Source: Heteronotia binoei (Eukaryota). From it: DNA of 64,000 nt. Below are positions 3,910-54,368 of the stretch, one piece after another. The position numbers and the translations under genes are program-made. The stretch is from NCBI RefSeq assembly GCF_032191835.1, contig NC_083224.1:34162001-34226000 (forward strand), given 5' to 3'. Each line of letters starts with the position of its first letter. Position 1 is the stretch's first letter. The notes beneath the pieces were generated by a model. The model ran no database searches and had not been told where the DNA came from. It saw only the letters and a program-made list of their open reading frames with translations.

Positions 3910-4625
3910 CATAAGAACATAAGAAAAGTCATGTCGGATCAGGCCAATGGCCCATCCAGTCCAACACTCTGCGTTGCACAGTGGCCAAAAAAACCAGGTG
4001 CCATCAGGAGGTCCATCAGTGGGACCAGGACACTAGAAGTCCTCACACTGTGCCCCCACAAAGCACCAAGAATACAGAACATCACTGCCCCAGACAGAGT
4101 TCCAACAATACACTATGGCTAATAGCCAATGATGGACCTCTGCTCCATGTTTATCCAATCTCCTCTTGAAGCTGGCTATGCTGGCAGCCGTCACAACCTG
4201 TGGCAGTGAATTCCATATGTTAATCACCCTTTGGGTGAAGTACTTCCTTTTATCAGTTCTAACCCGACTGCTCAGCAATTTCATTGAATGTCCACGAGTT
4301 TTCGTACTGTGAGAAAGGGAGAAAAGCAGGGCTTTTTTCAGCAGGAACTCACAGGAACACAGTTCCGGCTGGCTTTGTGTCAGGGGGTGTGGCTTAATAG
4401 GCAAATGAGTTTCTGCTGGGCTTTTTCTACAGAAAAGCCTTATGTGAAACAATGGCGACATCAGGGGGTGTGGCCTAATATGCAAATGATTCCTGCTGGG
4501 CTTTTTCTAGGAAAAAGGCCCTGGAGAAAAGTACTTATTTTCTCCATTGTAACTTATGGGAATAATGGAGTGCCCAGCAGACATTTCAGTTCCCTCCTCG
4601 CTTTCTGATGACCCTGACCGGGCAG
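3910..4625 (-). mobile_element. CR1 LINE 3' fragment interrupted by a hAT MITE
   Basis: cataagaacataag tail; minus-strand translation RTDKRKYFTQRVINIWNSLP matches the CR1 ORF2 C-terminus. Confidence 0.85.
4327..4523. mobile_element. hAT MITE (TIR CAGGGCTTTTTT) nested in CR1
   Basis: Perfect TSD GAGAAAAG at 4319-4326 and 4524-4531. Confidence 0.85.
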
Positions 4626-6136: not shown

Positions 6137-6409
6137 ATGGCCGCCTCCTCCTCCTTCAAGCGAGCCCCGCTGCTCGGCTCCCTGCTGAAGCGCCAGGGTC
6201 AACGTAGCGCGCCGGCTACTCCGCACCAGCAACAACTGCTGCCCACCTCGTCGGTGTCCGCCTTGCAGCCGAAGGAGGAGGCGCCGGCTTGCCCTTTCCA
6301 CTCTCCCCACTCGCTCTCCGCCCTGCCTGGCCCGACCAAGTGGCCCCTGGTGGGCAGCCTCTTCGACATCCTGCGGAAAGGTGGCCTCAAGAAGCAGCAC
6401 GAGACGCTG
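6137..6409 (+). CDS. CYP24A1: CYP24A1 coding exon 1 (mitochondrial targeting peptide to LPGPTKWPLVGSL...KQHETL)
   Basis: GCCATGG Kozak context; basic Ser-rich leader; LPGP-W-LxGS motif; GGLKKQHETL typical of CYP24A1; donor GTAAGT at 6410, phase 0. Confidence 0.95.
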
Positions 6410-6542
6410 GTAAGTCGCCCCGCCTCCCAAGCTGCCTGCACAAGCAACCCCAGGCAGCCATTGGTGGGGGGCAAGGGCTTCAAAGCCCAGCTACTGCTTT
6501 GCACGTGGAAGGTCCCAGGCCCAATCCCCAGTGATTCTAGGA

Positions 6543-6853
6543 CAGGGGTGGCCAAACTAGCTTAATGCAAGAGCCGCATAGAATAAATGCCAAATGTTTG
6601 AGAGCTGCAAGGTGTGTACATCGATGTTTGAGAGCCTCAGGGAAGGAAGGAAGATAAATAGATGGGGAGGGAAAGGAGGAAAGAAAGCAACTTTAAATGC
6701 ATTTTCCAAGCCATCAGCTGGCTTGATGAAGTGATTTAAAGAGACAAATGCCTTTTCCAAGCCTGCTGATGGGGGGGGGGGCTTCAAGAGCCACACAATA
6801 TGTGTGGAAGAGCCACATGTGTCTCCCAAGCCACAGTTTGGCTGCCCCGCCTG
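6543..6853. mobile_element. Charlie-like hAT MITE (TIR CAGGGGTGGCCAAAC) in intron 1
   Basis: Perfect TSD TTCTAGGA; a related copy starts at 8663 in opposite orientation. Confidence 0.8.
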
Positions 6854-7188
6854 TTCTAGGAAGAGGGTGCTGGGAAACCCTGGAGAATCATTGCTGGGTG
6901 ATCTGGCAGACTGTCTCAGCTCTGATGTTCATCTTGCATGAAAGGTGAGCATTGGAGCTCCTGCAGATGATGCTGCAATTGGACCTCTTGGTGTAACCTG
7001 AGAGCTGCACTTCAGAATCTTCTGTGACTTTTGCAAGGCATCCTGGGATGAACCTCTTGGAGGGTGCAGTGAAGTTGTTTGGGTTAACCAGATTGTCTTG
7101 ACATGATCCTAGTGTCCAGATCAGCACCTTGGGTCTGACAGGAGAGTTATTGCCCCCTTCCGGGAGAGTTTTCTGCCTCCTACATGCA

Positions 7189-7395
7189 CACACTTGGCTC
7201 AGTGCTGGAGCATCTGCTTGGCATGCAGAAGGTCCTAGGTTCAGTTCCCAGCATCTCCTGTTTAAAAAGGAAGAGAGGGATGAGACAATAGATGATGTGA
7301 AAGACCTCTGCCTGAGACCCTGGAGAACCACAGCCCAGTCTGAGTAGATGGTATGGACTTTGATGGGTCTGATCGAGGCACCTTCATTTGTGTTC
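7189..7395 (+). mobile_element. tRNA-derived SINE (related copies about 8068-8255, 15405-15585 and 35140-35340 on minus)
   Basis: A-box tggctcagtg and B-box ggttcagttcc followed by a shared body cctgagaccctggaga...ctgagtaga. Confidence 0.7.
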
Positions 7396-7403
7396 TGCTG
7401 CAG

Positions 7404-7594
7404 GTTGATTACCACCACAAGTTTGGCAAGATCTTCCGCATGAAACTGGGCGCCTTTGACTCGGTGCACATCGGCGCACCCTGCTTGCTCGAGGCTCTCT
7501 ATAGGAAAGAAAGCACCTACCCGCAGCGCCTGGAGATCAAGCCCTGGAAAGCCTACCGGGACTACAGGGGCGAGGGCTACGGACTGCTCATCCT
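7404..7594 (+). CDS. CYP24A1: CYP24A1 exon 2 ([16 protein letters not shown]...YGLLIL)
   Basis: CAG acceptor, GTGAGT donor, 191 bp; [16 protein letters not shown] is diagnostic of CYP24A1. Confidence 0.97.
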
Positions 7595-7744
7595 GTGAGT
7601 GGGAATGGGTCTGGGGCATTCCTGGGCTCTGAAGCCTGTCTAGGGGAAGGAGTCCTGATTCTCTGGTGTTAGGAGGGAGACATGCACCTTCTCTCCTTGA
7701 AGCCACTAGGCATTGCAGAATTCACTGCGAAACAGATTAGATAT

Positions 7745-7930
7745 GGTAGAAAAGAGTAAGAGTCCAGTAGCACCTTAAAGACTAACAAAATCTGTGGTAG
7801 GGGATGAGCTGTTGTGAGTCACTGCTCACTTCTTCAAATAACACAAAAGCTCATCCCTTGCCACACATTTTGTTAGCCTTTAAGGTATTACTGGACTCTT
7901 GCTCTTTTCTGCTGCTGCAGACAGACTAGC
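7745..7930. mobile_element. Penelope-derived inverted-repeat fragment
   Basis: Arms gagtccagtagcaccttaaagactaacaaaa and ttttgttagcctttaaggtattactggactc; related copies near 9150-9320, 18290-18480, 23925-24140, 55300-55400. Confidence 0.55.
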
Positions 7931-8795
7931 AGAGCTGCCCATCTAGATTGGATTTGGTTAGTTATTGCACCCCAAGTGATGTGAAGTGGTGGTGGAAAGT
8001 GCTATCAAGTCCCAGCTGACTTATGTCGAACCCATAGGAGTTTGAAAGCAAGAGATGATTTGGGGAGGGATGGTGGCTCAGTGGTAAAGCATCTGCTTGG
8101 TAAGGACAAGGTCCCAGGTTCAATCCCTGACATCTCCAACTAAAAAGGGTCCAGGTAAATAGTGAAAAACCTCAGCTTGAGACCCTGGAGAGCCGTTGCC
8201 AGTCTGAGTAGACAATACAGACTTTGATGGACCAAGGGTCTGATTCAGTAGATAATCAGGCCAGATGTTGCTTAGCTTCCAAGATCTGATGAGATTGGGA
8301 TAGCCTGGCCCATTCAGGCCAGGGCGCAGAAGTACAGAACCTGAATTCCCCATGTTTCTAAGCCCACACTGATCAAGGCTGGATACCTAATGAATTTTAG
8401 GTGGTTTTCATGTGTGATATCCATTCCTCTTCCCAAAAAAGTCTTTGAGCATCTCTCATTCTCTGCCATGACTGATTTTTTAAAAATATATAGTTCAGAA
8501 AACTTACGTATGTTCTGGCCTTACAAGACCTATTTAAGCACCTATAAAATATCATTAGTCTGCAATCCCATTTTGAAGACAAGACTATGCCAAACGGTTG
8601 TATATCAGAGCAGTCTGCTAATTTGGGATGGGTTTCAAGTGGGTAACCATGTCCGTCTAAAACAGGGGTGGCCAAACTGTGGCTCTCTCACACAAATGGT
8701 TTGGCTTTCAAAGCCCCATCACCCCATCAGCTGGCTTGGAAAAGACATTTGTCTCTTTAAATCACTTCTCCAAGCCAACCAGAGGCTTGGAGAAT

Positions 8796-10083
8796 GCATT
8801 TAAAGTAACTTCCTTTCCCCCTCTCTCTCTCTTCTCCCATCATTTTTCCTTCCTGCCTGCCTGCTCTCAAACATCTGACATTCATGTCTTGTAGCTCTCA
8901 TCTGACTTTTATTCTGTGTGGTTCTTATAAGAAGTTTGGCCACCCCAGTCTATAACAGTAGAACAAAGTTTGAGCGCAGTGGCATTTAAAGTAACTTCCT
9001 TTCCACCTCTCTCTCTCTCCTTCCATCATTTTTCCTTCCTGCCTGCCTGCTCTCAAACATCTGACATTCATGTCTTATAACTCTCATCTGACTTTTATTC
9101 TGTGTGGTTCTTATAAGAAGTTTGGCCACCCCAGTCTAAAACAGTAGAACAAAGTTTGAGTGCAGTGGCACCTTTGAGACAAACAAAGTTTCAATTCTAG
9201 GAATAAGTTTTTGTGTGCATGCACACTGTATCTGAAGAAGTGTGCAGGCACATTAAAGCTTGTATACAGAATTAAATTTTGTTCGTCTTAAACGTGCCAC
9301 TGCACTCGAACTTTGTGTTAAGGATGTACACTTTCGGTTCAAAATGGGTTCCTTCTGATTTCTGTACAAATTTACAGCCATTGCAGCAAATGGGATTAAG
9401 ACCACTTTTGTACTTGGATCAAGTCACTTGGTTGCAGAGTTTGGAAGCTGGTTAATTGCATCAGAGCTTGGAAGCTAATTACGGTTGGTTCTTGAATGGA
9501 AGGCCATCAAGGAAGAGACTGCAGAGGAAGGTGATGGCAAGCCACCTCTGCTCATCTCTTTCCTTACAAATCCCACGAGGTGGAACTTGATGGGATTGAC
9601 ATGAGTTGGCTGCAACTCAGTACCACAGTTTACCTTACTATATCATTTCTGAATGCTGTTGATGTGGAAGAGAAAGTCAGGAGATAAGTGTTTTTAGAGC
9701 AAAAGGCCATTTTTAGCCACCACTTGATTCAGAGAGAAGTGCAAAATATAGAGGAAACACAATACAGATACAGCCTAAAGTATGATGCATTTGCATCTAA
9801 GACCACTTTTTTTAAACATATTGCTCAATCTAAGTGGTGCCCGAAAATAAGTTTTTTTGGGGTAAATTTTTTGGGAGGAAAGTAACTTCCTTTCCACCTC
9901 TCTCTCCCTCCTCCCATCAATTTTCCTGCCTGCCTGCTCTCAAACATCTGCCATTCATGTCTTGTAGCTCTCATCTGACTTTTATTCTGTGTGGTTCTTA
10001 TATTAAAGAAGTTTGGCCACCCCGGTCTAAAACAGTAGAACAAAGTTTGGGTGCAGTGACACCTTTAAGGCAAACAAAGTTTT
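8796..10083 (+). repeat. Local triplication of a 186-205 bp MITE-end plus flank unit (8796-8981, 8982-9190, 9879-10083)
   Basis: Directly visible near-identical direct repeats starting aaagtaacttcctttcc. Confidence 0.9.
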
Positions 10084-10451
10084 ACTTGTAAGTTAATTTT
10101 ACAGTAAGAGTAGTTCAGCCATGGAATTGGCTGCCTTAACCTCATGATCTTATTTTTCTAAGTCCTATAAATGTGGGTCTTGGCTAAAGGACGCTTACAG
10201 TACCGTAGCATTACACTCTTTTAAACCCATTGTCTTCAGTACACTTATGACAGTGTAATTCTGCTCAGGATCATTCTGTTCATGTAATTCTTGACATTTA
10301 GCAGCCATTGGCATTGGCTGGTATTCCTTGTGAGGCTCCCCAAAATACTAAGAGAAAACACCCACATCAAAAGAACCTCTGCAAATGAATATGATAAGAT
10401 TTGTTTAAAATGAGGATCTCTTTAATTCTTTGTGCTTTTTATTTTGTGCAG

Positions 10452-10545
10452 AGAAGGGAAGGACTGGCAGAGAGTAAGAAGCGCTTTTCAGCAGAAGTTA
10501 ATGAAGCCCACAGAGATTGTGAAGCTGGATTCCAAAATCAACGAG
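10452..10545 (+). CDS. CYP24A1: CYP24A1 exon 3 ([19 protein letters not shown]...KINE)
   Basis: CAG/GT boundaries, 94 bp, frame continues from exon 2; WxxxR C-helix motif. Confidence 0.96.
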
Positions 10546-11029
10546 GTACCAGATTGGGGTGGGGGTGTTGTGCTTGATGGTTATTCTCAGAATCAATGAA
10601 ACGTCAAGAAATCTTGTCATTTAAGACTTATCCAGATACAGATGCTGCTGAAGATTTTGAAGAGTCTGCTTGGTATGGGTATTTTCACTGCTTGAAAAGG
10701 ACTGTCAAAGAACTGTCTCTGAAAACACCCCCCCAGTGTGGTAGAATCCTCCTTGCATTGTTTCATTTCAGACCCATATAAAGGGAATGAATTTTTGAAT
10801 GCTCCTGAAAATGATACTTTTATTTATTTAAAATATTTATGTATCTTTTTTTCCCTTCCAGTTCAAAGTAGTTTTATAAGTGGGAAATTAAGAACATAAT
10901 AACATAAGACAGGAGTGGCCAATGGTAGCTCTCCAGATGTTTTTTTTGCCTACAACTCCATGGCCAATGGCTGGGGCTGATGGGAGTTGTAGGCAAAAAA
11001 CATTTGGAGAGCTACCATTGGTCACCCCT

Positions 11030-11365
11030 GACATAAGAGAAGCCATGTTGGATCAGGCCAGTGACCCATCCAGTCCAACACTGTGTGTCACACAGTGGCC
11101 AAAAAAACCCGTGCCATCAGGAAATCCACCAGTGGGGCCTGGACACCAGAAGCTCTCCACTATGCCCCCCCATGCACCCAAAATACAGAGCATCACTGCC
11201 CCCAGACAGAGAGTTCCAACGATAAGCTGTGGCTAATAGCCACTGATGGACCTCTGCTCTATATGCTTATCCAGTCTCCTCTTGAAGCTGGCTATGCTTG
11301 TAGCCGCCACCACCTCCTATGGCAGTGAATTCCATGTGTTAATCACACTTTGGGTGAAGAAGTAT
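11030..11365 (-). mobile_element. CR1 LINE 3' fragment
   Basis: cataagagaagccatgttggatcagg tail, same family as 3910. Confidence 0.8.
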
Positions 11366-12767
11366 ATTAGGACTAGAGTAGTGTTTTTACTCTGATACAC
11401 TAGTTTCATGTAGGGATTTTTGTGTGTGCAGAGCAACATTCAAAAAATGTGAGCCACCTCGGTGGGAAGGGCGGGATATAAATCAAAATATAAATAAATA
11501 AATAATATCCTCCACCTTCAGACTAAAATGGCAAAATGAAGGAAGGGCTATACCACTTGATTTTGATTTATTTTATTTATTTTATGACTTCTATCCCGCC
11601 CTTCCCAACAAGTGGCTCAGGGCGGCTTACAACACAATGATCAATGCATACCTCCACTTTAAGAGAAACTGTACATGTGTCCCCTGTTGGAGAGTCACTT
11701 AGAGAGGATTCTGACGGTCATTATATGTTTTATGAACATGGGCTCTTGCTATGTCCAAGTGGCCAGACTTTGTCTTAACAAGTGGTGGCTATAGATTCTA
11801 TTACTCATTAGACATGTTTAGACATTTTAGTACTGTTCTTTCACACAACCTCTGAGGATATCAGCACTTAGCGAAGGGAAATAGCTGAATGTCTGAATCC
11901 ATAATGGAACTAAATGACATATTTCTAAAAAGCATGTATTCCCCTCTCAAGCAAAAATACAATATAATTAGTAGATGTTGCCAATTGCCCTGCTTATTGC
12001 TGTTACAATCAACCAACCAACCAAAAGAACACAAAATATTATAGAAGTGTTTGAGTTCTCCAGAATTCCTGGAAGGGGATGGGGGTAATTTTGGTCCTAA
12101 TCTGATGACTACACATCTGCATCCTATGTTGGGTAGATTAGGTGGAGCAGACTTCTGAGAAGAAGAGGGGGACAATGGAAGCTGCTAGTTGAAAATGTGA
12201 AAAACAGTAGATGATCTGTTAAAAACCAATAGATGGTCAAATGCCAAACAGAACAGGTCACTTAAAAGGCTGAAAGCAGAAGGAAAATGTTGTAGTTGTT
12301 AGATCAACAAAGATGGAGACTTACTTTTGGATGATGCTCTATGTAAACAAAGTCAGATTGGGTAATATTGCTTAATGATGGGGAAGCAAAAAACCCTGTA
12401 TCTTCCATTTGAAGAATCTCTCTGGTTATTGATTATGATACTTCCAAACAGACAGGGGTGGCTTTACATCAAATATTTAGCACCTACTCTTAAAAACAAA
12501 TTGGGGTCAAGATGCATTTATGAAATACACACGTTTCCCCACTGCTCACAGCTACACTGTATTTGGCAGTTTGAGAGGTTTAGATTAAAAAAAAAACCAT
12601 ATGAACATGAGGTGGAGCTAGTGAGTCAATTAATTTGAAAAATTTTGGAGTTTCAAGTGTGGAAAAATAATTCATTCTTGTGCTGTGGAAAACTTTGCAA
12701 CACTTTTTTAGAAAAATGAACATGTACTTGTGATTTATGATTCTATCTTTTAACATTTGTTTTGTAG

Positions 12768-12864
12768 GTTTTAGCAGATTTCATGGATCGAATAGACACA
12801 CTTTGCAACAAGAATGGAGAAATAGAAGATTTGTATTCTGAACTGAACAAGTGGTCATTTGAAA
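12768..12864 (+). CDS. CYP24A1: CYP24A1 exon 4 ([10 protein letters not shown]...LNKWSFE)
   Basis: TAG/GTAAGT boundaries, 97 bp, in frame. Confidence 0.96.
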
Positions 12865-13859
12865 GTAAGTTTTTGCCTTAATTCATAACTCTGGGTCAGA
12901 TATGTTGTACTGTACACTTGATTCTTTTCTGATGTCCAGTTTCTAGCTGTGACAGATTCTTTTCTATATGAAGGGGGAAAAAATGAAAGAACCTTTTACT
13001 GTTTAATAGGTTAGTAATACCCTCTTAGGAACAGAGTATAGTCTAGTTGCTGATCTTCAGTTGGTAGGTTAAGGTTTGCAAATGGATCACACTTTGATCA
13101 AACATGTTTGTATTTTTGGTTGCTTATATGCAACCTCTCCAGACATATATGAAGCCAGCTGACAATAGATCAATGCAAAGCCATTGGAAATGATGCCGTG
13201 CAACTCTGCAAACTATGGACTGTGATGACCCCAAGTTGAACATACATATGTGGAGATCAGAATATACTACCATTGTTTGGAGTGTTTGGTGGGGGTGTGG
13301 AGAGACCAAGAAAGAAAAGAAGAAATAAGTGCATACAGGCAGAAAGAGAACAAATCCAGAAATGATTGTGAAGAAAAGCAAGTTCCATAGATACTATTTC
13401 TCCCTTGCTTTACAAGGTGTACTCACCAAAATCTCGTATTTTGTATGAGAACCCTTTTCTGCTTTCTGTCTCATTACCCTAGCTCTTTAAAATGTGGTGA
13501 AAGACAGTCATGTACAGCTAAATTTCAAAAGCGAATTCCTGTACAGTAGGATGGGGTACATTCCAGTGAACACATAGAAACTGCTATGTAAAAATCTTGG
13601 TTTTCTCTCTTGACCTTCATTCTCAAAACCAAAAAAGTGAAACCTGAAGTGCAGCAATATTCACCTTCATTTGCTTGCAATTACGTCACTGGTATCTTGT
13701 TCCTTCCCCTGCCATTGGAATTTCAGCTATAAGCTTCTCACGTCAAGGAGCTAGGGGGTATCTATTTGTTTGTGCTTACAATGTGAGTGTGTGTGTGTGG
13801 GGGGGGGACGTCTCATATGCCCAACCACACTGAATAAATGACTCTTGTTTTCCGAACAG

Positions 13860-13951
13860 GCATGTGTCTGGTGCTGTACGGGAAGAGGTTCGGGCTCCTG
13901 CAACAGAATGTGGGAGATGAAGGCTTGAACTTTATCAAGGCCGTCAAGACG
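13860..13951 (+). CDS. CYP24A1: CYP24A1 exon 5 ([15 protein letters not shown]...FIKAVKT)
   Basis: CAG/GTAAGA boundaries, 92 bp, in frame. Confidence 0.96.
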
Positions 13952-14120
13952 GTAAGACGTTTTCCCCTCTAACTGTGTTAGACAGTTGATGTTTCACTTA
14001 AGTGGAGGTCCAGAAGTCCTTATAGGCATACCCTGTGCAGTTTGCATTGAGAGGGATGGGTTTTTCGTGTTGGAGTAAGCAGGGTCTGGGGTACAAAAGA
14101 AAAGAAGATGACTCTGTATT

Positions 14121-14264
14121 TCTAAATACAAAAGTCTGGCAGGCTCACACAAAGGCATGGGATCATATCTTCAAGACAGATAACTAACTGGGCACCTGCA
14201 GAAGCAGCAAATATGTTCTATGGCTCAAACTCCTTCTGGTTTAAATCCCCTACCAACAGCTTGC
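14121..14264 (+). pseudogene. CYP24A1: Partial duplicate of CYP24A1 exon 6 and intron 6 start, donor GT mutated to AT
   Basis: 144 bp matching 15198-15341 with 5 substitutions. Confidence 0.92.
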
Positions 14265-14543
14265 TAATTAGAAGAAGAAGAAGATATTAGATTTATATCC
14301 CATTCTCCACTCAGAGTCTCAGAGTGGCTCACAATCTCCTTTATCTTCCTCCCCCACAACAAGACACCCTGTGAAGTGGGTGGGGCTGAGAGGGCTCACA
14401 CAGAAGCTGTCCTTTCAAGGACAACTCTGCAAGAGCCATGGCTGACTCAAGTCCATTCCAGCAGGTGCAAGTGGAGGAGTGGGGAATCAAACCCAGTTCT
14501 CCTAGATAAGAGTCTGTGCACTTAACCACTACACCAAACTGGC
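14265..14543 (-). mobile_element. Squam3-like tRNA SINE
   Basis: Reverse complement of ccagtttggtgtagtggttaagtg head and (ttc)n tail; same family at about 32715-32963, 36332-36505, 45327-45545, 48813-49028, 57996-58270. Confidence 0.75.
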
Positions 14544-15144
14544 AAACTAGATAGGAAAGTGGGATTTACACCTTTTTCCCTGTTCTTCATCTGTCTCCAG
14601 ATTGCTACTGTTAGCAATCCTCTCAGAGGTTCTGCACAACAGAACTCTCTCACTCTCACTCTCTCACTCAGCAAGGTAGCTAGGAATCGATATCACTTTT
14701 CTTTAATCAGAAACTAACATGCTTGATAGTAAAGCTTTCTGTGCTCTTTAATCAGTTTGAATGGTAATTACTGGGTAATCACCCTGCCAACAATTCATAG
14801 AGGTAGCTGATATCTTTTTCCTGGAATGAATGAACAGACAAGGCATCCAGGATAGAGGTGGGCCATACCTGTCCAGCTCTTTCACACTCATTGGATGCTA
14901 CAGTATTTCAGGAGACAAAGTCTCCCTGGTCAGGTCATGAACCTGTGACTTATTTCAAGAGCCAGTGTGGAAACCTTTACCACTCATTCCAGTTTTTCCT
15001 CGGAGTCCCCAGTAAAAGTTCAGCCAAATTGGTGAAACCACAGGTCTGCTACAGTGGAAAGTCCCAGCTCCTCCTTGCCTCTTCTGCTTCCATTCTGTAT
15101 TTTTGTTGCACATTTTACAACTGACATTTATTTGTTTTTTGTAG

Positions 15145-15256
15145 ATGATGAGCAGTTTTGGAATGATGATGGTGACTCCAGTTGAGCTCCACAAAAGTCT
15201 AAATACAAAAGTCTGGCAGGCTCACACAAAGGCATGGGATCATATCTTCAAGACAG
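15145..15256 (+). CDS. CYP24A1: CYP24A1 exon 6 ([37 protein letters not shown])
   Basis: TAG/GTAACT boundaries, 112 bp, in frame. Confidence 0.96.
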
Positions 15257-16040
15257 GTAACTAACTGGGCACCTGCAGAAGCAGCAAATATGTTCTGTGG
15301 CTCGAACTCCTTCTGGTTTAAATCCCCCACCAACAACTTGCATGGCAAAGTCAGCTGCCATCTTCTGACTGGAAGGGAAATTTGACAGTTGGGTGGAGGA
15401 GAGGGGCCGTGGCTCAGTGACAGAGCATCTTCTTGACATGCCAGAGATCCCAGGATCAATCTCTGGTACCTCTAGTTAAAAGGACTAGGTAGGAATTGGT
15501 GCGAAAGAGACCCTGGAGAGCTGCTGCTGGTCTGGCAATACTCACCTTGATGGACTGATTCAGTATAAGGTGGCTTCATGTGTGGGACTAAGTATTTTCT
15601 GTTAAAAAAAAAATCCCCCAATGCAGTAAGCCACCTGTAGCTCTTCAGCATACCACCTGTGGTTCTTCTGAGCACTGTTCCTCTAAAGCAGGAAAGTGGG
15701 CTGTGCCCTTACCTGACAAGGTTTGTGGTTGGCAAGTGGTTCCCAGTGCTGGAGAGACAAGCAGTAAACTTCCCTGAAGTGCAGGCCTTACACCAGGGAT
15801 GGAAGTATATGCGGCTCTTTTTCTTGATAGTTTAAGTGCCAATGTGGCTCTCCATGAACTCTGGATTGAATTCCACTGTCATAAACTCATATCTGGAAGA
15901 AGGCTAGTGTAGGATTGTTTTCCTTGATTCCTTTGTTTTGTGCATGTGGAGTTTTTAAAAATGTAATGTGGAAGAGCCCTGTAAGTGACCCTTTTTGTTT
16001 CTTGATGATCACTCGTGGTTTTTCTCCTTTCCTTCCTCAG

Positions 16041-16186
16041 CAAAGCGTTCCATCAACAGCAGGCTGAAGAAATACTCTGCCAACCCCAGCGAAGATTTCC
16101 TTTGTGACATTTATTTTGGGAGCCGGCTTTCAAAGAAAGAGTTGTACGCAGCCATCACAGAGTTTCAGATTGCAGGAGTGGAAACG
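16041..16186 (+). CDS. CYP24A1: CYP24A1 exon 7 (I-helix ...TEFQIAGVET)
   Basis: CAG/GTAAGC boundaries, 146 bp; AGVET oxygen-binding motif. Confidence 0.96.
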
Positions 16187-17876
16187 GTAAGCAGAAGTTG
16201 CATTTTCTGCATTAAGAAAGAGCACACTGCATGACTTTCAGCTGTCTGTAACAGTGGCCTTCCCTTGCAATTGAATACGATTCTCTTTGTCTCATTTTGA
16301 GTACTCGCTGTTTAATAGATCATGGTTCAGACATGAGCCCTCCAGGGTGTCAGAGGTCTTTCACAGCACCTACGTCCTGATCTTTTTTTTAACAGGAAAT
16401 GAACCTGGGTCTTCTGTGCGCAAAGCAGTTACTCTACTAGTGAGCAACAGCCCTTCCCCAGAACTGCATCTCCATGTAGTTTTCTCTTCTCTGGCCAAAT
16501 CACAGGTAGAATTTGCCAGTAGAATCCAGGCCACAGGTTTCCAAACCAAATGCAACCTGAAGATTCCACCCAAGGCAGCCAGTGTGGGTTGGCCATACAA
16601 ACTTTTGATTCATATGGCAAGTTCTACAAAGTGACAAGACCAAGGAGTGATCATGAGATGCTGATCCCTGCTGTGAGGACTAGAAGGTGAATGCTCATAG
16701 TTCTGGCATATTGATGGCCCTGCAGCCAACTAAGAGAACAGTCTCATGCAAGACAGTGATGTGGGGCTCACCTTTGCACTACAGTTTGCTCACCATCTCC
16801 TTTCTCAGCTCTTCTGACTACCCCAGTGAGTGAAGAATAGGTGGTGTGTGCTGCAGGAAAGAAGCCATAAAAGATTAAATCTGCCTGTTGAGCAAGGCAT
16901 ACTCTTGAGGTGGGGCACCTGCCAGTGCCTAGAGGTTTTAATAGAGCCCACTGCTGCCAACTATTCACCTGTGCACCCCCCCCCCTCCCGCAATGCTTGC
17001 AATGCCTGCCTTTCCCCTACCTGGTTGCAAGGGCTCTTGTTACCTGAGCTCCTGGCTGCATGTGCTGCCCAGCTCTGCCAGGGAAGGATGTGCACCCTGG
17101 CATTTCTCCCAGTAGTCACAAGGTGGTACTCTGTCTGCTCCCCCTCCACCCAAAAAACCTGGAACATGCGCTGCTACTGGGCAAATGGCCAAAGGGGGGA
17201 AGAATCCAAACCTTTGGGCTAGGTTTTTTTTGCTATTGATATTCAAGGAAAAGTGAAATAATTGTTTCAAAGGTAAGTGCTTCTCACAGCCGCTGTGGAC
17301 AAATGTGTATGTTAGATCGGCATCCCAGGTTCCATTCTCTCCCAAAGTGGTTGTGAAGATGAAATGGGATAATCCCACACACTCCATCTTGAGCTTCTTG
17401 TCAGAAGGGTAAAATTTGACAGCAGTAGCCAACCTTTTGAGTGGCAGCTCGAGTTATGACATGACTGGTTATAGGTTATATAAATCTGCCCATGTTGGGT
17501 CGTCCCTGGACTACAGTTACATAAATTCAAGTCAACTTTTTATCTGAATAAGAAATCCTCATTCTTGATGCTTTAAATCCTGTACTCCTGCAAAGAACAA
17601 GTGGCCCGATTTTTTAAGATATGTCCTTGTTTTTATAATAGAAAGCAGGCAGTGGCAAGTATATTCCTGAGGCATAGTCTGCCACAGCCAAAATAACATG
17701 AGAGTCATGTGGCAAAAGAGTTGTTGTGACTAATAAGTTCATTGTGGCATACACTGTGAGCCAGAGCCCACTGTAGAAAGAATACGCATATTTTGAATGT
17801 TTCGCCATTGATTTGTCACATTAATTACTGAGCCTGCCAGGATCTGAGGCGCTGAATTTTTCTGCTCATGTTTCAG

Positions 17877-18043
17877 ACTGCCAACAGTTTGCTCTGGGCT
17901 CTCTATAACATCTCACGCAACCCACACGTCCAGGAGAAACTGCTTGAGGAAATACAGAGTGTGCTTGGGGCTGGAGAGAGCCCAAGCGCTGAACACTTGA
18001 AGAAAATGTCCTATTTGAAGTCCTGTCTGAAGGAATCTATGAG
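17877..18043 (+). CDS. CYP24A1: CYP24A1 exon 8 ([16 protein letters not shown]...LKESMR)
   Basis: CAG/GTAAAG boundaries, 167 bp; K-helix ExxR motif split across the junction. Confidence 0.96.
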
Positions 18044-18639
18044 GTAAAGTGTTCTGTGTAGACTTGTTGGCATGTAAAGGAATGCTGTGTTTTGTTTTTG
18101 CCACTTGGTTTCAGTCGGCTGTGAAGGATAATACATGTGATAATATGGAATAGACCACAGTCCTGTTTTTTTGATAGCAGTATTCATTATATACAATAGT
18201 TCCCCCTGCAGGTATTTATACATTCCAAAATGTTCAAAGCACTTTTCATGCAGTGTCTTTAACACCCTATAGATCCAGGAGGGCAGTCATGTTGGTCTGA
18301 AGCAGTAGGACAAAGCTTGAGTTCGGTGGCACCTTTAAGACCAACAGAGGTTTATTTCAGTTATGAGCTTTTGTGTGCAAGCATTCTTCCTCAGATACAA
18401 TGGAATGGCTTTTATTTCTGTTTTCATTATGTTATATCTGAAGAGGTATGCTTGCAAGGTGCCACTTCCTTCTTAACACCCTACGTTACACCAGAATTAA
18501 CTGTGTTGCAGAAAGGCAAGCTACACTTCTCTAGGTTTCCAAAGCCAGCTAGGTTTGAACTTCCCTACCGTTATATATCCCTGTTAGAAGTAACTTGTTT
18601 GAATAAAATAGTAAAGAAACTGTATTTATTTTGCTCTAG

Positions 18640-18718
18640 GCTGACTCCCTCTGTGCCATTTACCAGTCGGACCCTTGATAAAGAAACAACCCTTGGAGAC
18701 TGTGTGCTTCCTAAAGGG
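18640..18718 (+). CDS. CYP24A1: CYP24A1 exon 9 (RLTPSVPFTSRTL...LPKG)
   Basis: TAG/GTGAGT boundaries, 79 bp, in frame. Confidence 0.96.
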
Positions 18719-20144
18719 GTGAGTATATATTTCTACTACCCAAGGCAACTATGCATATCCAAGGCACACAGCCCCGTCCCTAAACGCTCTTCTTCCCTAG
18801 TCAGTGGGGTAGGTCCTTTATGTGAATCTAGGAAGAATGTGGTTCGAGGGGATGGGGATGTGCGCTTTTGTATTTTATTGCTTTCCATACTTTCAGCCGT
18901 TTTGTGGAAGCACAGTGGGCTGAGTCATATTGGACGAGTTTGAGAGCCAGCTTGGTATTCATATCACTTAACAGGGTTGGTCATTTTGACAGTTTCTAAA
19001 ATGACAAGGATCCCAGCATGATTTTTGAGGCTTCAATAGTTGCATGGCAGGCAAATATATACAGGTACATCTCAGGCTGTACCACCTTTTCACAGCATGC
19101 AGATACAGTGTTGTGGCACACATCCCATGCTGAATTTTTGTTCTTTTAAAGATGCAGATGCCCTTGCAGGGGGAAATACCACATTTTCTTAAAGCCTTTT
19201 CCCTTAATGTTTCCATGGTAAGGGAAGACTGCGTTCTCTCCCTGCCCCCACCTCCACCTCTCCTCTCTATGAATTCAGACAGGGTTATAGCATCACTTTG
19301 TGCAAGCTACAGGTAAGTCCAAACATTGAAAGCAGGTTGCTGGCTAAGGCTTGACATGTCCCAGGGTCAAAATATTGACCTCTGTTGCAACTTTGTTTAA
19401 AACTTTAAAGCATTTAAAGACTGAAAGCTTGCAGGCAAGGAATATTCTGTGTTTCAGTGACTCTTTCAGTGTCAAAATAGCTGTAGGTGACCTACCTTTA
19501 AAAAGACAAAAACCTGGAATGAAACCCCAGACACAGTCTCCAGTATTTTTGATTGTATATGAAGTTTAGGTCCCAAATACTCATCACATCTACCATGTGA
19601 CTACCATGGGGATATGCAGCTACAACAAGTGAGAGTTCCCAATGGGAACTCAATTCAGAACCATCTCAGAGTCCCAGTTTGGATCGGAATCATGGCATGG
19701 GGAGAGGCACTTTAAGGCCATCCCATGATGTTTTCCCAACCTGAAACAGCTCCAGGGTCATTATTTACATGGGGAGGTGGACTGTATATGCTCTGAAAGC
19801 TTACACATTCACACACACCCCAGGCAAAAAACTTGCCTCAGGACCATTTCAGGTCAGAAAAATCAGTGCATGGAGAATGCTAGTGCCCCCTCCTCTCCCC
19901 ACCCCACAGTCCCAATCCAAACTGGGCCTCTGCAGCGCTTCTGAATTGAGTTCCCATAGTAAACTCACAGCTGTCATATGGGGATCACATGGTAGTGTTA
20001 TGTATGGTTTGTCTCACAATGAACTTTGATGCAGTATCATACTATTGGTGGAGAAAACCATTTCCTTTGACTCGCACAACACTATTTTCCTTTAGCAAAA
20101 ACCGAACTTACTATCCCCCACCCCTATGGGTTTTGTCTCTGCAG

Positions 20145-20336
20145 ACAGTGTTGATGCTAAATAGCCACATCCTAGGATGCAGCGAAGAAAACTTTAGTGA
20201 CTGGACTCAGTTCAAACCCGAACGTTGGCTGCAGAAGAACATAAACCCTTTCGCTCACATTCCTTTTGGCATTGGGAAGCGGATGTGCATCGGACGCCGC
20301 TTGGCTGAGCTGCAGCTTCACTTGGCTCTTTTCTGG
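20145..20336 (+). CDS. CYP24A1: CYP24A1 exon 10 (PERW and heme-binding [10 protein letters not shown])
   Basis: CAG/GTAAGC boundaries, 192 bp; FxxGxRxCxG signature with the axial Cys (about C465). Confidence 0.97.
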
Positions 20337-20649
20337 GTAAGCTTGCAATTAACACCATATTCCCTGTGATCTTTATTTAATAAAAATTCCAGTTGTGAGG
20401 GGAAGTATGCTGTATGAACTTATCATCTTGTGTAACAATGAAAAGAGGATTTTCCTAATCCCTGAATTGTGCTATATGAATGCTTTCCTTCTTCATAAAT
20501 AGATTATATTTTTAAAAATGTTCCTCATTTTCTGACAAGATTCTGTTAAAGGAGACCTATTTTAAATAGCTTGTATCCCTCTGAAAAGAAGGCAGGGAGA
20601 GTGATTGCTGCTGATTCTCACCCAGTAGGCTCCCAGTCTTCCTTTTGTG

Positions 20650-20830
20650 CAGCCTTTTTTTGTAGCAGGAACTCTTTTGCATATTAGGCCACACACCGCT
20701 GGTGTAGCCAATCCTCCTGAAGCTTACAGTAGGCCCTGTAGTAAGAGCTCTGTAAGTTCTTGGAGGATTGGCTACAGCAGGGGTGTGCGGCCTAATATGC
20801 AAAGGAGTTCCTGCTACAAAAAAAGCCCTG
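20650..20830. mobile_element. Palindromic hAT MITE in intron 10
   Basis: Whole element is an inverted repeat; TSD CTTTTGTG / CTTTTCTG. Confidence 0.85.
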
Positions 20831-21037
20831 CTTTTCTGCATTAACAAGGGCCTGCTAACCCTCAGGATCATTATTACAGGGGACTTTCCTGTTGAAATGA
20901 ATGGAACTGGCCTGATTTTAAGGATGACTGAGTTGTGTCCTTGATTATAACTTGTGCAGACACAGATTTTGTGAGTTCCAAGAATTACCGTGTTAGCACT
21001 GGTTAAATGAAACTTTCCCTGATGTAGATGGTCCAAG

Positions 21038-21300
21038 TTAGCCCGATCTTGTCAGATTTCAAAAGTTAAACAGGGTCAGCCCTGGTTAGTTTTTGGCAGG
21101 GCTTTTTTTGTAGCAGGAGCTCATTTGCATATTAGGCCACACCCCCATGATGTAGCCAATCCTCCAAGAGATTACAGTAGACCCTGTAAAAAGAGCCCTG
21201 TAAGCTCCAGGAGGATTGGCTACATCAGAGATGCGTGGTCTAATATGCAAAGGAGTTCTGGCTACAAAAAAAGCCATGGTTCTTGGATGGGAAGCCATCA
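21038..21300 (+). mobile_element. 5S rRNA-derived SINE head split by a hAT MITE (21097-21278)
   Basis: gcccgatcttgtcagat...cagggtcagccctggttag[MITE]ttcttggatggga follows the 5S internal sequence; TSD GTTTTTGG / GTTCTTGG. Confidence 0.75.
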
Positions 21301-21509
21301 GCAGAGTCTGGGTTCACTGCATAGAGGCAGGCAATGGCATAACCACCTCTGAATGTCTTTTGCTTTGAAAACCCTATGCAGTCACCATAAGTTGGCTGTA
21401 ATTTGACAGAAATCTCTGCCCAGCTGCATAGGCCGAAAATAATTGGTTCCTAGGAAGCCTTGTTATCGGTAAGTTCCAGAGACTCAACTCTTTTCTCTTT
21501 CTCTCGCAG

Positions 21510-21621
21510 GTTGTACGGAAGTACCAGGTTATTGCAACCGATGACAAGCCAGTAGAAACCCTGCACTCCGGACTCCTGATACCCAACCGTGAAATCCCTG
21601 TTGCATTCAGAATACGATCAG
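21510..21621 (+). CDS. CYP24A1: CYP24A1 exon 11 (VVRKYQVIAT...AFRIRS), no stop codon
   Basis: Strong polypyrimidine CAG acceptor; C-terminal P450 beta region; ends TCAG|GTAAAG donor, phase 1. Confidence 0.9.
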
Positions 21622-22381
21622 GTAAAGAGAAGGGCTTCCTTAGGGAATTTTTGTGGTCATGCAAGCCTAAGAGAACAGCAGAGTAAAACTAGGTGATTTT
21701 TTTTTTGGTCCTGTTTATAATGCTGAAAGTGTGGCCGATCCTGAGCATTATAGACGTGCCTAAAGAACACCTTGGGGAAAGTTGAGCATTCTTTGCAGTA
21801 GGCATGGGTGCAATGGGAGATGTTTCTTTTGCCCACTTTTGTCTGTTTCTGTAGTAGTTTGTCCATTGGTGGCCTATTCCTTATGGTAGCCACTAAAACA
21901 CTAAGAATACTGGAATTGGAATGTATTCATTTGTTGCATCCTGAGAGAAACCAGCCATTTCTATTGCATTTGGAAAGGATCTGAAGACTTTTTTACAGCC
22001 CGTTTCTAGTTCAGATGACTTCTTTCCACTAAGAATCCTCTTGCTAGAGAAAGCAAACAGGATTGGAGTCCAACCCAGTGTAGATTATCTGGGCCATAAT
22101 AGATTTCCAGTGGGGGTTTCGTTACTGAGCAAGAGGCCTGCTGAAATGTTGAGCAGTTTCTTTTTCAAATATGACTGGCAGGATTTCTTCCTCACACTTG
22201 TCGAAGATCTTGAGCAGGCTGGGTTGTTGGAATACTATTACTTCAATATACACAGCCTTGAGGTATAAAGTCAGTAACTGTTATAGTAGAACAAGTATCT
22301 CAGTCTCTGAATGGAGCTTGTGCCACATAGCCTTTTCAGAACCACAAAGTGTAAACAATGCTCTCACCTTTTCCCCCTCAG

Positions 22382-22404
22382 ATACAGTGAAAAGGAAACA
22401 GTAG
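22382..22404 (+). CDS. CYP24A1: Probable coding part of CYP24A1 exon 12 (DTVKRKQ-stop)
   Basis: Acceptor ctctcaccttttccccctcAG at 22381; phase-1 join gives GAT ACA GTG AAA AGG AAA CAG TAG. Inferred, no transcript evidence. Confidence 0.6.
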
Positions 22405-32963: not shown

Positions 32964-33103
32964 NNNNNNNNNNNNNNNNNNNNNNNNNNNNNNNNNNNNN
33001 NNNNNNNNNNNNNNNNNNNNNNNNNNNNNNNNNNNNNNNNNNNNNNNNNNNNNNNNNNNNNNNNNNNNNNNNNNNNNNNNNNNNNNNNNNNNNNNNNNNN
33101 NNN
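32964..33103. other. Assembly gap (140 N)
   Basis: N run beginning inside a SINE tail. Confidence 0.99.
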
Positions 33104-49328: not shown

Positions 49329-50257
49329 TAAATAGGGTGGGATATAAATCCAATTTCTTCTTGTTCTTCGTAGCAGCATAAATGAGCTAAAACCTCACCT
49401 TTTGCCAGAGGTTTTGGAAGGAGGTGGGCTCTTTTTTGTTCTCCCACTGATTCATTTTCAAAAACGCAGTACAAATGTAGTAAGACCCTGACTCTCCCTT
49501 GAGCCTTCTAGTATATGAATAAGGTTGACTGGAGAAGTCCAGATGGCTCTTTTGCTCTAGAACAGGGGTGTCAAACATCCGTCCCGCGGGGGGCCTCTCT
49601 CCTCTCCATCAAACAGTTCTGCAAAGGCAGGAACTCACTCGACCATTGTGGCCAGCCTCCACGTCATTCTGTGGGCTCTTTAAATTCTGCGCTTGTTAGA
49701 GTAGAGGAGCCATCTGGCCTCTTCCCCTCCCCTCCAAGCAGCTTTGCAAAGGCAGGAGTTCCGTTGACTGAGCCCGCTAGCCCTGCGTTGTTCCGGTGCC
49801 TCTTCGATCTCACGCCTGTTCAAGCAGAGCAGCCTCCCTGGTCTCTTCCCCTTCCCACCAATCAATTTTGCAAAGGCAGGAAGGAGCTCAGTCCACGGAG
49901 TCCACGTCATCCTGGCGCTTCTTTGAATCGCCGAGGTAAAGCAGCTGCCTGGCCTCTTCCCCTCCCCACCAAGCAGTTTTGGAAAAGCTGGAACTCAGCC
50001 AGCTAGCCCTGCTTCGTTCTGATGCCTCTTTGAATTGTGTGCTTGCTGGGATAGAGCAGCCGTCCTGATCGCCTCCCATCCCCCCAAAGCAGATTTGCAA
50101 AGAGGAGGGAGGGAAGGAAGGAGGGAGGAAGGAAGGGAGGAGGGAAGAAAGGAAGGAGGGAAGGAAGGAAGGAAGGCCGCCCCCTCCCGCCAGCGCCCCC
50201 CCTCCCGCCAGCGCCCCCCCCCCCCCGCTTTCGGCCCCCTCCCTCCCTCCCAGCGAC

Positions 50258-50442
50258 CTCCGCCGCTTCCCGGCCTCCACCGCCGGGCCCCGCGCGCGGG
50301 CAGGGAAGGCGGCGCCGGCGAGTGCAGCCGGCTTCTGAGGGGCCCCTTGGCCTCTCCGCCGCTTCCCGGCCGCCGCCGCCGGGCCCCGCGCGCGGGCGGG
50401 GAAGGCGGCGCCGGCGAGTGCAGCCGGCTTCTGAGGGGCCCC
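50258..50442 (+). repeat. Two 89-bp GC-rich direct repeats (50258-50346, 50354-50442)
   Basis: 3 mismatches between copies, CpG-dense. Confidence 0.9.
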
Positions 50443-53141
50443 CAAGGGGCCCCCCAGACCTGGGGCGATCCGCCCCCCGCCCCCCCCTCCCTACGCCACT
50501 GCTCCCATTAAAGAGTCTATTACATTTCCTTGTTTTTGAGTTATATCTAAGAAGTAGCCAGAAATACTACTAAAAAGAATCTTGTAAAATCTGAAGGGTT
50601 GTATACAAGTGTGAAGCCCAAAATCTTGAAAATTCTTCCAGTTTCCAGGTCTGGAGGCCATTTCACACCTTTGGCTTTTTAGGGATGCCTCCCCTGGAAG
50701 TACAGCTCATCTCCCGACTACAAAGATCAGTTCCCCTAGATAAAATGGATGCTTTGGGAGGTGGACCTCTTGGCATTGTACCCCACTGAGGTCTCTGCCC
50801 CCTCATGCTCTGCCCCAAGTCACCAGGAGTTTCCCAACCTGGCTGTGATAATACCCCCCGCATCCCCCACTGGTGGCCAAAAGGGGACCTGGGAACCCAT
50901 TTCAAGTTCTATTCATTAGGGACTTTGATAGTAACAAACAATCCCTTCCTTTTTAGCCTAATCCATATGAAATTTTCCTCCAACTATCTAAATTAACTGG
51001 ACCAGTTTTGCCAGTTTTTTTGGTGGTACAGCGATATCTGTGGCAGGCATTCTACTTTCAGTTTCCATTTCCTTACACAGTACTTTTTTTTCCCTTGGAG
51101 GGAAAAGGGAAAGGGGTAAGGGAAGGGTGAAACAGGGTGAGAAAACACAGCAGATATATGCTTGACTTGGCATGCTGGCCAAACAGAACATTCAACTTGT
51201 GTTGTGCCAAATAATATCATCCTTGGTTGTTTTCTTTCTGCAGTGTTTTCCTCAGTCAGTGGTGGCTCAGGGCCAAACAAGATGTGAAAGGACCTTCATG
51301 GCTGCCACAAGGATGCTGCTGCCATTTTAAAGAGCTTTTTAAAAATGCTGTGAGGGTCTGATCCTGACTGAGCCTGCAGAGCGACAGGCTAAGGAGTGCT
51401 TGTTTCCCACTCTTGTGCCTCATCAAATGTGGCATAGTGGTTAAGTGACAGGCTCTAATCTGGAGAACCAGGTTTTCTTCCCCTGTCCTCCACATGAAGC
51501 CTGATGGGTGACCCTGGGCCAATCACAGTTCTCTCTGAACTCTCTCAGCCCCTCCTACCTCACAAGGTGCCTGTTGTGAGGAAAGGAAGGCAAGGCAATT
51601 GTATGCCACTTTGAGACACCTTAAGGTAGAGAAAAGCAGTGTATAAAAACCAGGTCCTCTTCTCTTCTTCCACTAAAACACTTCTCACAACTGTTTTGGA
51701 ACTTTAAAAGGCATGGAAGACAACAGGCATTGGGAAAAACAGCTTTATGCCTCACAGCATTTTAAAATCCCTTTAAAATGGTGATGGCATCGTCTTGGTG
51801 GCCATGATGATATGATGTTTAGTTTGGCCCTTGCTTTCTCGGAAAAGGCTCTCATTCTATATTTACTCAGGGGTGAGGATGGTCTAAGGCAGAGTTTCCC
51901 AAACTTTTCTTTCCCGTGGCCTGGTTATTTTTACACTTCTCCTTCGTGGACAACTAAAATTTGGGGGTGGAGCCGGGAGACAGGAATTATGTCATTTTCT
52001 GTAGTGTCAAGGACCAAGTGATGTTACTTCCGGGTCACACTGAACCAAAACTCCACCTTTTCCTGTGATGTCACTTCCAGGGCACTCCCCCAAACCTGCC
52101 TCTTTTTCGTAAGTAAATTCATTTTCAGAAAAATCTCTCTGAAACTCATGCTGAGCCAAAATGGGGGTGGAAAGTGGGCAGGCCTCTCTTTTCACCCCCA
52201 CACCTGCATGCAGCTATCTGTTTGTGTATTCTTTTCCAGCTTGCAAGCACTCCTAATGCCCATGTTCAATTGCCTGCACTACCTACACATCCCTTCCTCA
52301 ACAGCACTGGCCAGTGTATGCAATTGAGAGTGTTGTTGCCATTGCCATCAGGAATGCTAGCACTGTTACCACCCACACTGGGCCCTGGCAGCTGCTCTAC
52401 CTCAAAATATGCTGACACATTTAGTAGGCCCTTCCTTCAGCTGCTACTCCTGGAACCCTGCCTCAAGCTACAACCAAGCCTGCTTGGTTTCAAGAAAATC
52501 TTTCGACAGCTATTTTTCATACTTTTCTTTGGTTGAAACATGGGGAAATTACTGTGAAAGATAGCAGAGAATTGTATTGCAATTAATGAATTAATTTCAA
52601 GTTATATGAAGTTCATACAAGCTTTTCTGCAGTTATCCCAAAAAGGATATTTATTAAGGGCTTGCAGCTTTTTATTGGCTGTGTTTTCCATGCCTTTAAA
52701 AGCAACCTGTTGTACAGATAGCCAGTGAACTACTTTCATCCTTTTTAATATCTACAGGAGGAGTTTAATTTTGGTGTCAGACAGCTGTTAAAAGCAGGAC
52801 CAGTAAAATGGTGGCAAGTTCATAGTACCATCTCTTCCAGTGTTGTTGAGATATACCTCAGTAATCTCCAATAATCTCTTTCTGCCCCACACCTCTTACT
52901 CTCACTCACTCACACAGAAATCTCATAGAAGGCCAGCTGGTTACAACTGAGGGTGCCAACTTTTCATTGGCAGAGGACCCACGTTGGATCAGGTCAGTGG
53001 GCTATCCAGTCCAAAATCCTCTCATACAATGCCCAGAAAGCACCAGAATGTCCACCACCGGGGGCAGGGCACTAGAAGCCCTCCCACTGTTGCTTCCCCC
53101 CCTCCCAGCACCAAGAATACAGACAGAGCATCACTTGCAGG

Positions 53142-53143
53142 GA

Positions 53144-53230
<87 letters not shown>
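53142..53230 (+). repeat. (GAAA)n microsatellite
   Basis: About 22 perfect units. Confidence 0.97.
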
Positions 53231-53231
<1 letters not shown>

Positions 53232-53436
53232 GGAGGGGCAAAGGAAAAAAAAAGCCTTCCTCACCATCAGATGACTCCAGCCAGCAAAAATTATGCCCAG
53301 GTAGGGTTCCCAAGTCCATCCCCAGAAATATCTGGGGACTTTGGGGGTGGAGCCAGGAGACTTTGGGGGTGGAGCCAGGAGACACTGGGGTGGAGCTAGG
53401 GGGGAGGGGGGGAAATGACGAGCCCTGGCCCGCCTC

Positions 53437-53673
53437 CACGTCCCCGGCCCGCCTCCACCCCCCCCTCCGCTTCCACCCCAAAAGCGGAGCGGGCGAGGTG
53501 GCAGCGGCGTGGCGGCCTCTTCTCCACTCGCTGTGGCTGCTCCTCCAAGATGGTCTGAGCCCATCTCGGAGGAGCAGCCACGGCGAGCGGAGAAGAGGCC
53601 GCCGCTGCCGCCTCGCCCGCTCCGCTTCTGGGGTGGAAGCGGAGGGGGGGGGTGGAGGCGGGCCGGGGACGTG
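53437..53673. repeat. 237-bp GC-rich near-perfect inverted repeat
   Basis: Arms 53437-53553 and 53561-53673, 7-nt loop. Confidence 0.9.
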
Positions 53674-54368
53674 TCGAGCCGCGAGTCTGGGTCCTAGAAG
53701 GGCCTGGATTCGCGGCTTGCCATGCTCCTGGCCTGCCTCGCCCTCCCCTGCGCTGCTGCCACCTCTTGGCTGCTCCTCTGAGATGGGCTCAGCCTGGGCT
53801 CATCTCGGAGGAGCAGCTGCGGTGGGAGGAGAGGGGGCAGCAGCGGCGCAGCGGCCCCGGGATGCGGCGGCTGGCCATGCTCCCCGGCGCCGTTTCCACC
53901 CTCTCCCCCCGCTTCCGTTTTTTGGGGGAGCGGGGGAAGAGGGTGGAAATCCTGGGGTCCCCCGCCAGGGCGGGAGGGTTGGGAAGCCTATGCCCAGGGG
54001 TCATTTGGTAAAATAAAATAGCTACTGGAATGCCCACTCCCCGCCCCTCCTGGCTGAAAAAAACACACACACCCTTCTTTGCCGCCCAGGCCTCCCAGGG
54101 AAATCTCCCTAAAAGAACATACTGCAAGGCACATGAAAGCTCATACCTTGAAGAACACTTCATGGGTCTAAAGTGCCAGTGGACGCCAGCTTTTCTCTCA
54201 AACACTGGGTGTGGGGGAGAAGGAAGGAGAGGCAGCACAGCTCCTCTCTGCACAACACAGAGATGGGGCGGGGCTAGCTTTGGCTTTTCTTGTGACCCAG
54301 TAGTGAGGCTTCCGTGGCCCAGTACCAGTTTACGACCCTGCAAATGGGAAACACTGGTCTAAGGCATC

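Follow-up and report, generated by a model that had tools for sequence, protein, structure and literature searches.

Loss of the CYP24A1 stop codon in sampled geckos probably recruits an untranslated exon and adds a short C-terminal tail

The window analysed here, a stretch of 64,000 nucleotides from the gecko Heteronotia binoei, carries on its forward strand the coding region of CYP24A1 in 12 exons (6137–22404). CYP24A1 is the 1,25-dihydroxyvitamin D3 24-hydroxylase, a mitochondrial P450 that degrades vitamin D. The spliced model was built against the protein of Gekko kuhli and joins exons 1–4 (6137–6409, 7404–7594, 10452–10545 and 12768–12864), exons 5–8 (13860–13951, 15145–15256, 16041–16186 and 17877–18043), exons 9–11 (18640–18718, 20145–20336 and 21510–21621) and the coding part of exon 12 (22382–22404) into a product of 525 residues, every junction having consensus GT–AG dinucleotides. 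The database proteins nearest to this product are all named CYP24A1, the best match among the solved P450 structures is rat CYP24A1 (E = 3e-207), with CYP11A1 at 2e-80 or weaker, and the haem-binding motif FxxGxRxCxG is present, as it is in the rat and other vertebrate enzymes, which belong to the same fold family. The Pfam family PF00067 (p450) is found with E = 2e-89 on the RefSeq protein XP_060089218.1, which is identical to residues 104–525 of the model. Judged from these comparisons, the gene in the window is the orthologue of CYP24A1 (mitochondrial cytochrome P450 family 24) and is otherwise intact.

The XP_060089218.1 locus in the H. binoei assembly GCA_032191835.1 matches positions 4440–25404 of the window at every one of the 20,965 bases. 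The RefSeq protein itself comprises 422 residues and starts at Met104 (window 7440), exon 1 being missing from the RefSeq model; the intact exon 1 reading frame at 6137–6409, which is 72% identical to the N-terminus of the Paroedura protein, would complete the 525-residue protein, and the public H. binoei model therefore looks N-terminally short. In intron 5, tblastn places a partial second copy of exon 6 at 14122–14214 (exon 6 itself lies at 15145–15256). Both strands of intron 10 hold, at 20557–21352, reading frames with ...HIRPH...VANPP... motifs, with a similar one near 4033–4485; these look like an interspersed repeat family. Further along the window there is a run of 140 N (32964–33103) and, downstream of CYP24A1 at around 50000–54000, a region with a GC content of 0.52–0.53 compared with about 0.42 around it, possibly a CpG island belonging to an adjacent gene.

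Exon 11 (21510–21621) is preceded by tctcgcag and consists of 36 codons representing the ancestral C-terminus (translation VVRKYQVIATDDKPVETLHSGLLIPNREIPVAFRIR), the serine codon TCA at the ancestral stop position (21618–21620) and a single base G, directly followed by the donor GTAAAG. This arrangement had been described in an earlier note on the same DNA, which also held that the 36 codons are those of the mammalian C-terminus; both statements agree with the present analysis, the 36 residues aligning end to end with the last 36 of rat CYP24A1 (PDB entry 3k9v; E = 3.6e-10), the chain of which ends in ...AFRPR where the H. binoei counterpart has ...AFRIR. In the rat and other vertebrate genes, too, one exon holds the last 36 ancestral codons, with a donor and another exon coming after it. 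Intron 11 (21622–22381; 760 nt) runs from the donor GTAAAG to the strong acceptor tttccccctcag, the boundary ccccctcag/AT falling between 22381 and 22382 (a slash marks the splice boundary throughout), and exon 12 begins at 22382–22404 with AT ACA GTG AAA AGG AAA CAG TAG. Joined to the G of exon 11, this start reads DTVKRKQ before the stop TAG at 22402–22404; the H. binoei tail after ...AFRIR is SDTVKRKQ, 8 extra residues, and the C-terminus predicted for the extended protein is ...AFRIRSDTVKRKQ. The spliced reading of 525 residues given in the earlier note is thus that of the full 12-exon model. Beyond the stop, exon 12 continues as 3' UTR from 22405 to a putative end at 23795, with AATAAA at 23601 and 23775 and similarity among geckos up to about 23930.

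The NCBI coding sequence for H. binoei ends at window position 22404, so the public annotation already uses the junction between 21621 and 22382, with the same acceptor as had been proposed, and already includes the SDTVKRKQ tail. From conservation and the RefSeq annotation, we infer that this junction is spliced and the tail translated in H. binoei. A search of transcript fragments with the C-terminal 90 residues of the G. kuhli protein returned mammal, fish and other matches and no gecko fragment, and literature searches returned no paper on the C-terminus of gecko CYP24A1 or naming the exon that holds the stop codon.

The end of exon 11 was compared as DNA in 11 species comprising five geckos, other sauropsids and the rat. 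Heteronotia, Gekko kuhli, Eublepharis macularius and Paroedura picta all read CGA TCA G/GT and Sphaerodactylus townsendi reads CGA CCA G/GT. A stop codon stands at the same place in the colubrid snake Pantherophis (CGC TAA G/GT), the bird Rostratula (CGA TAA G/GT) and the turtle Caretta (CGA TGA G/GT), and also in the lizard Podarcis, which has one extra base compared with the other sauropsids (CGA TAA AG/GT); the garter snake Thamnophis elegans has CGC CAA G/GT. In the rat the exon ends CGG TAG GATGCTGAG/GT, with TAG nine bases further from the donor, and the genomic stretch from stop to donor reads TAG...GAG/GTGAGC. The proteins give the same picture. All six gecko species sampled extend beyond the arginine, adding 4–8 residues across the exon 11–12 junction, whereas ...AFxxR is the end of the protein in the rat and in nearly all other vertebrates. 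The protein ends at the arginine in about 20 non-gecko squamates, Sphenodon, turtles, Gavialis, most birds, and likewise in mammals, frogs, most teleosts, the coelacanth and sharks. The extension is therefore not special to the H. binoei genome; it is common to the geckos sampled and already present in RefSeq proteins. The possibility raised in the earlier note that the arrangement is general to sauropsids is not borne out by the comparison of gecko and squamate C-termini.

Judged from the stops in the snake, turtle, bird and lizard outgroups, the ancestral sauropsid gene had its stop codon, either TAA or TGA, a single base ahead of the intron 11 donor, and the sense codon of geckos is derived. 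The change from TAA to TCA, which had been suggested from the H. binoei sequence by itself, appears the most parsimonious because the snake, the bird, a lizard transcript and Podarcis have TAA, with TGA in the turtle. The gecko sample covers three families (Eublepharidae, Sphaerodactylidae and Gekkonidae) and no pygopodoid gecko, and a stop loss in all Gekkota is an extrapolation from it. Given the gecko phylogeny, the stop loss would date back roughly 100 million years.

In all five gecko genomes the acceptor is the same and the donor is conserved, with introns of 760–811 nt. Gecko exon 12 begins with ATACAGTGAAAAGGAAACAG..., which aligns with cag/ATACTTTTTGAAGGAAGACAG... in Podarcis and with aag/ATATCTTCCTGAAAGACAG... 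in the bird Rostratula. The Logan transcript contig L013, from a non-gecko squamate, contains an uninterrupted coding sequence of 517 codons, as expected for a spliced mRNA, and its junction reads ...AGA AGA CGA TAA G/ATCTACTTTGAAAGAAACAAGC. The stop thus lies one base before the junction (CGA TAA G/ATCTACTTTGAAAGAAAC, with ATCTAC... following), and as this TAA is upstream of a junction that is used, exon 12 is untranslated in that squamate. The DNA of the gecko tail is homologous to untranslated sequence in Podarcis, the bird and L013, which together with the outgroup stops supports the proposal of the earlier note that loss of the stop turned UTR into coding sequence. Simple pattern searches for exon 12 in the turtle and the rat did not locate it; in the rat it is presumably untranslated, given the published 12-exon rat gene and the genomic TAG...GAG/GTGAGC. 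A stop codon within about 50 nt of the last junction escapes nonsense-mediated decay, and the ancestral sauropsid stop lies within that distance.

Taken together, it is very likely that a stop loss across the gecko clade recruited the untranslated exon 12 of CYP24A1 and added a short, probably near-neutral tail. In the ancestor, exon 12 would have been spliced on and left untranslated, as only one base separated the stop codon from the intron 11 donor and translation had already ended. On the stem of the sampled geckos the middle base of this stop would have been altered, most simply from TAA to TCA, with a later change to CCA in Sphaerodactylus. The consensus of a 5' splice site is MAG/GTRAGT, and the last two bases of the former stop codon double as positions −3 and −2 of this site; because the stop overlaps the donor consensus in this way, TAA to TCA removes the stop and yet leaves CAG/GTAAAG, and the donor would have remained consensus after the stop was lost. 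Translation would then cross the unaltered exon 11–12 junction in phase 1 and terminate once exon 12 presents a stop in frame, which in H. binoei would add 8 residues (SDTVKRKQ) to an otherwise intact enzyme. Programmed stop-codon read-through was also considered and was rejected, as the genomic codon is TCA (serine) and there is no stop to decode.

The tail is SDTVKRKQ in Heteronotia and Gekko kuhli, SDTIKRKE in Paroedura and PDAVKRKD in Sphaerodactylus (+8 in each), and SGMI in Eublepharis (+4), where TAA stands in place of the AAA of the other geckos and AAAGGAAACAGTAG is kept downstream of the stop. Over the 23 nt of the tail, the identities of the four other geckos to the window are 0.96, 0.74, 0.70 and 0.83, comparable to those of the next 100 nt of UTR (0.81, 0.74, 0.67 and 0.75), whereas for exon 11 they are 0.96, 0.93, 0.89 and 0.92. 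Over this short stretch and five species, the tail thus appears to evolve like UTR and unlike the enzyme, that is, under weak constraint, which argues against a strong role for it, including the effects on membrane or adrenodoxin interaction or on stability that the earlier note had raised; the extension is probably nearly neutral, with a small functional weight for vitamin D biology.

That the tail is instead a selected functional addition, for example through KRK altering contacts with the membrane or adrenodoxin or the turnover of the enzyme and hence vitamin D catabolism, seems unlikely. The tail has persisted in three gecko families, four species have both KRK and a stop at the same position, and two substitutions within the tail are synonymous (GTG or GTT, AGG or AGA). 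The retention of KRK and of the stop position in these four species of two families, a small sample, could reflect some selection on the peptide. The conservation of the tail is, however, no higher than that of the adjoining UTR, the Eublepharis tail is only four residues long and is without KRK, and unrelated CYP24A1 tails arose in other lineages. Moreover, the purine-rich stretch behind KRK is preserved in untranslated sequence as well, namely after the stop in Eublepharis and in Podarcis, L013 and the bird, which points to constraint at the RNA level; the purine-rich start of exon 12 may be conserved as RNA, perhaps as an exonic splicing enhancer. An AlphaFold2 model of the G. kuhli protein, made from an alignment of 38 sequences, has a mean pLDDT of 63, and of about 64 for residues 511–519, the block that contains the tail, and is too poor to place it.

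When the sequences are put in register, TGA stands in Podarcis and L013 where Eublepharis has TAA and the other geckos AAA, and snakes have G as the first base of this codon. A lead drawn from this register, by parsimony on a small sample with the Euleptes DNA left out, is that the tail grew in two steps, first to +4, up to the in-frame TGA or TAA retained in Podarcis, L013 and Eublepharis, and then, through a second stop loss (TAA to AAA), to +8, exposing KRK. The second stop loss would date to the common ancestor of Sphaerodactylidae and Gekkonidae.

A different C-terminus would result if intron 11 were retained or partly removed, the protein then ending in ...RIRSGKEKGFLREFLWSCKPKRTAE or in another form that terminates within the intron. 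The reading frame into intron 11 is open for 22 codons (SGKEKGFLREFLWSCKPKRTAE) up to a stop at 21684–21686, and the first 100 nt of the intron and a block at about 21752–21780 are better conserved than the remaining intron. The RefSeq protein of Euleptes europaea ends in a tail, VWQFLSITDLPEEQLWEIQKVVHTSQ, that differs from those of the other geckos and that maps to this intron 11 block and not to exon 12. We nevertheless consider a C-terminus encoded by the intron distinctly improbable. The read-in frames of the five geckos differ in length (22, 25, 25, 68 and 3 codons), the intron has no AATAAA or ATTAAA, the first lying at 22965, its donor and acceptor are consensus-like and conserved, and the NCBI models in five geckos, H. 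binoei included, join to exon 12. The intron-retention product outlined in the earlier note accordingly stands as to its stop at 21684–21686, and finds no support as a C-terminus, its reading frame being unconserved (3–68 codons) and poly(A) hexamers absent from the intron.

The block at about 21752–21780 is conserved among geckos, with 88% identity between Sphaerodactylus and Eublepharis over 60 nt; it was also placed at about 25060–25210 of L004. The Euleptes tail was considered as a longer reading of exon 12, since LPEEQL occurs also in another frame of snake exon 12; this was rejected because the tail maps to the conserved block within the intron in Sphaerodactylus and further geckos. A search with the back-translated motif of the Euleptes tail gave no match. 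The block could be an alternative exon, a splicing element or an annotation artefact; as the Euleptes tail maps to it, another splice form, a minor one, may exist in some geckos.

That sauropsids or squamates ancestrally had the extended form, with the stop arising elsewhere, is very improbable: several unrelated vertebrates also carry extended tails, but these are unrelated in sequence, the arginine is the last residue in species from sharks to tuatara and in about 20 non-gecko squamates, and Thamnophis differs by one base from Pantherophis (TAA to CAA). An assembly or base-call error at 21619, with TAA as the true codon, which the earlier note had itself named as a danger, has next to no chance of being the explanation, because only the prior chance of such an error speaks for it and four independently assembled gecko genomes carry C at this base, and a sense codon at the homologous site in these genomes shows that the stop is truly absent.

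The preferred reading, a stop loss in geckos that recruited exon 12, can be compared with known systems. The extension of C-termini by stop-codon loss and co-option of the 3' UTR is a known phenomenon (Andreatta et al., 2015, Genome Biol Evol, PMC4494051). As in the extensions reported there, a point change would have removed the stop, the UTR being read to the next in-frame stop. In the gecko gene, in contrast, the co-opted sequence lies in a separate downstream exon, so that the added coding sequence runs across a splice junction; the gecko event is also fixed and old (three families), not polymorphic, and the lost stop overlapped the donor consensus. A parallel is the stop loss in the garter snakes, which struck this codon as well and involves the same phase-1 junction together with a homologous exon 12. 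Here the first base was changed from T to C (TAA to CAA), so that the two events differ in the base altered, and Thamnophis elegans and T. sirtalis share an unrelated 16-residue tail, QDSTGGTADIFVRQNS, from an event much younger than that of the geckos. On this sequence comparison, the loss of the CYP24A1 stop in garter snakes is independent of that in geckos. Extended tails in passerines, a barbet, salamanders, Pelobates, anchovies and the reedfish Erpetoichthys suggest further separate stop losses; among the non-gecko extended tails the check at the DNA level covers Thamnophis, the others being protein tails of which some may be annotation artefacts. A stop inside the donor consensus, together with a spliced UTR exon that offers an early new stop, suggests why the stop may be lost repeatedly, and would make this position a recurrent stop-loss hot spot in CYP24A1. 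The combination of all three proposals, in which the donor-overlapping stop is such a hot spot, the gecko tail grew in two steps and the basic tail tunes vitamin D catabolism, has a small chance of holding as a whole.

In conclusion, the extension of gecko CYP24A1 is a new and ordinary example of a known phenomenon that is already contained in the annotations. The gecko CYP24A1 models with 4–8 extra residues are probably correct and not mis-annotations, while those of Euleptes, with its different tail, and of H. binoei, with exon 1 missing, need a second look. The gene offers a clear and dated case, in a well-studied enzyme, in which formerly untranslated sequence was turned into coding sequence over a splice junction. 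If the basic tail alters the stability of the enzyme or the binding of its partners, it could have helped to tune the catabolism of vitamin D in a lineage that was ancestrally nocturnal.
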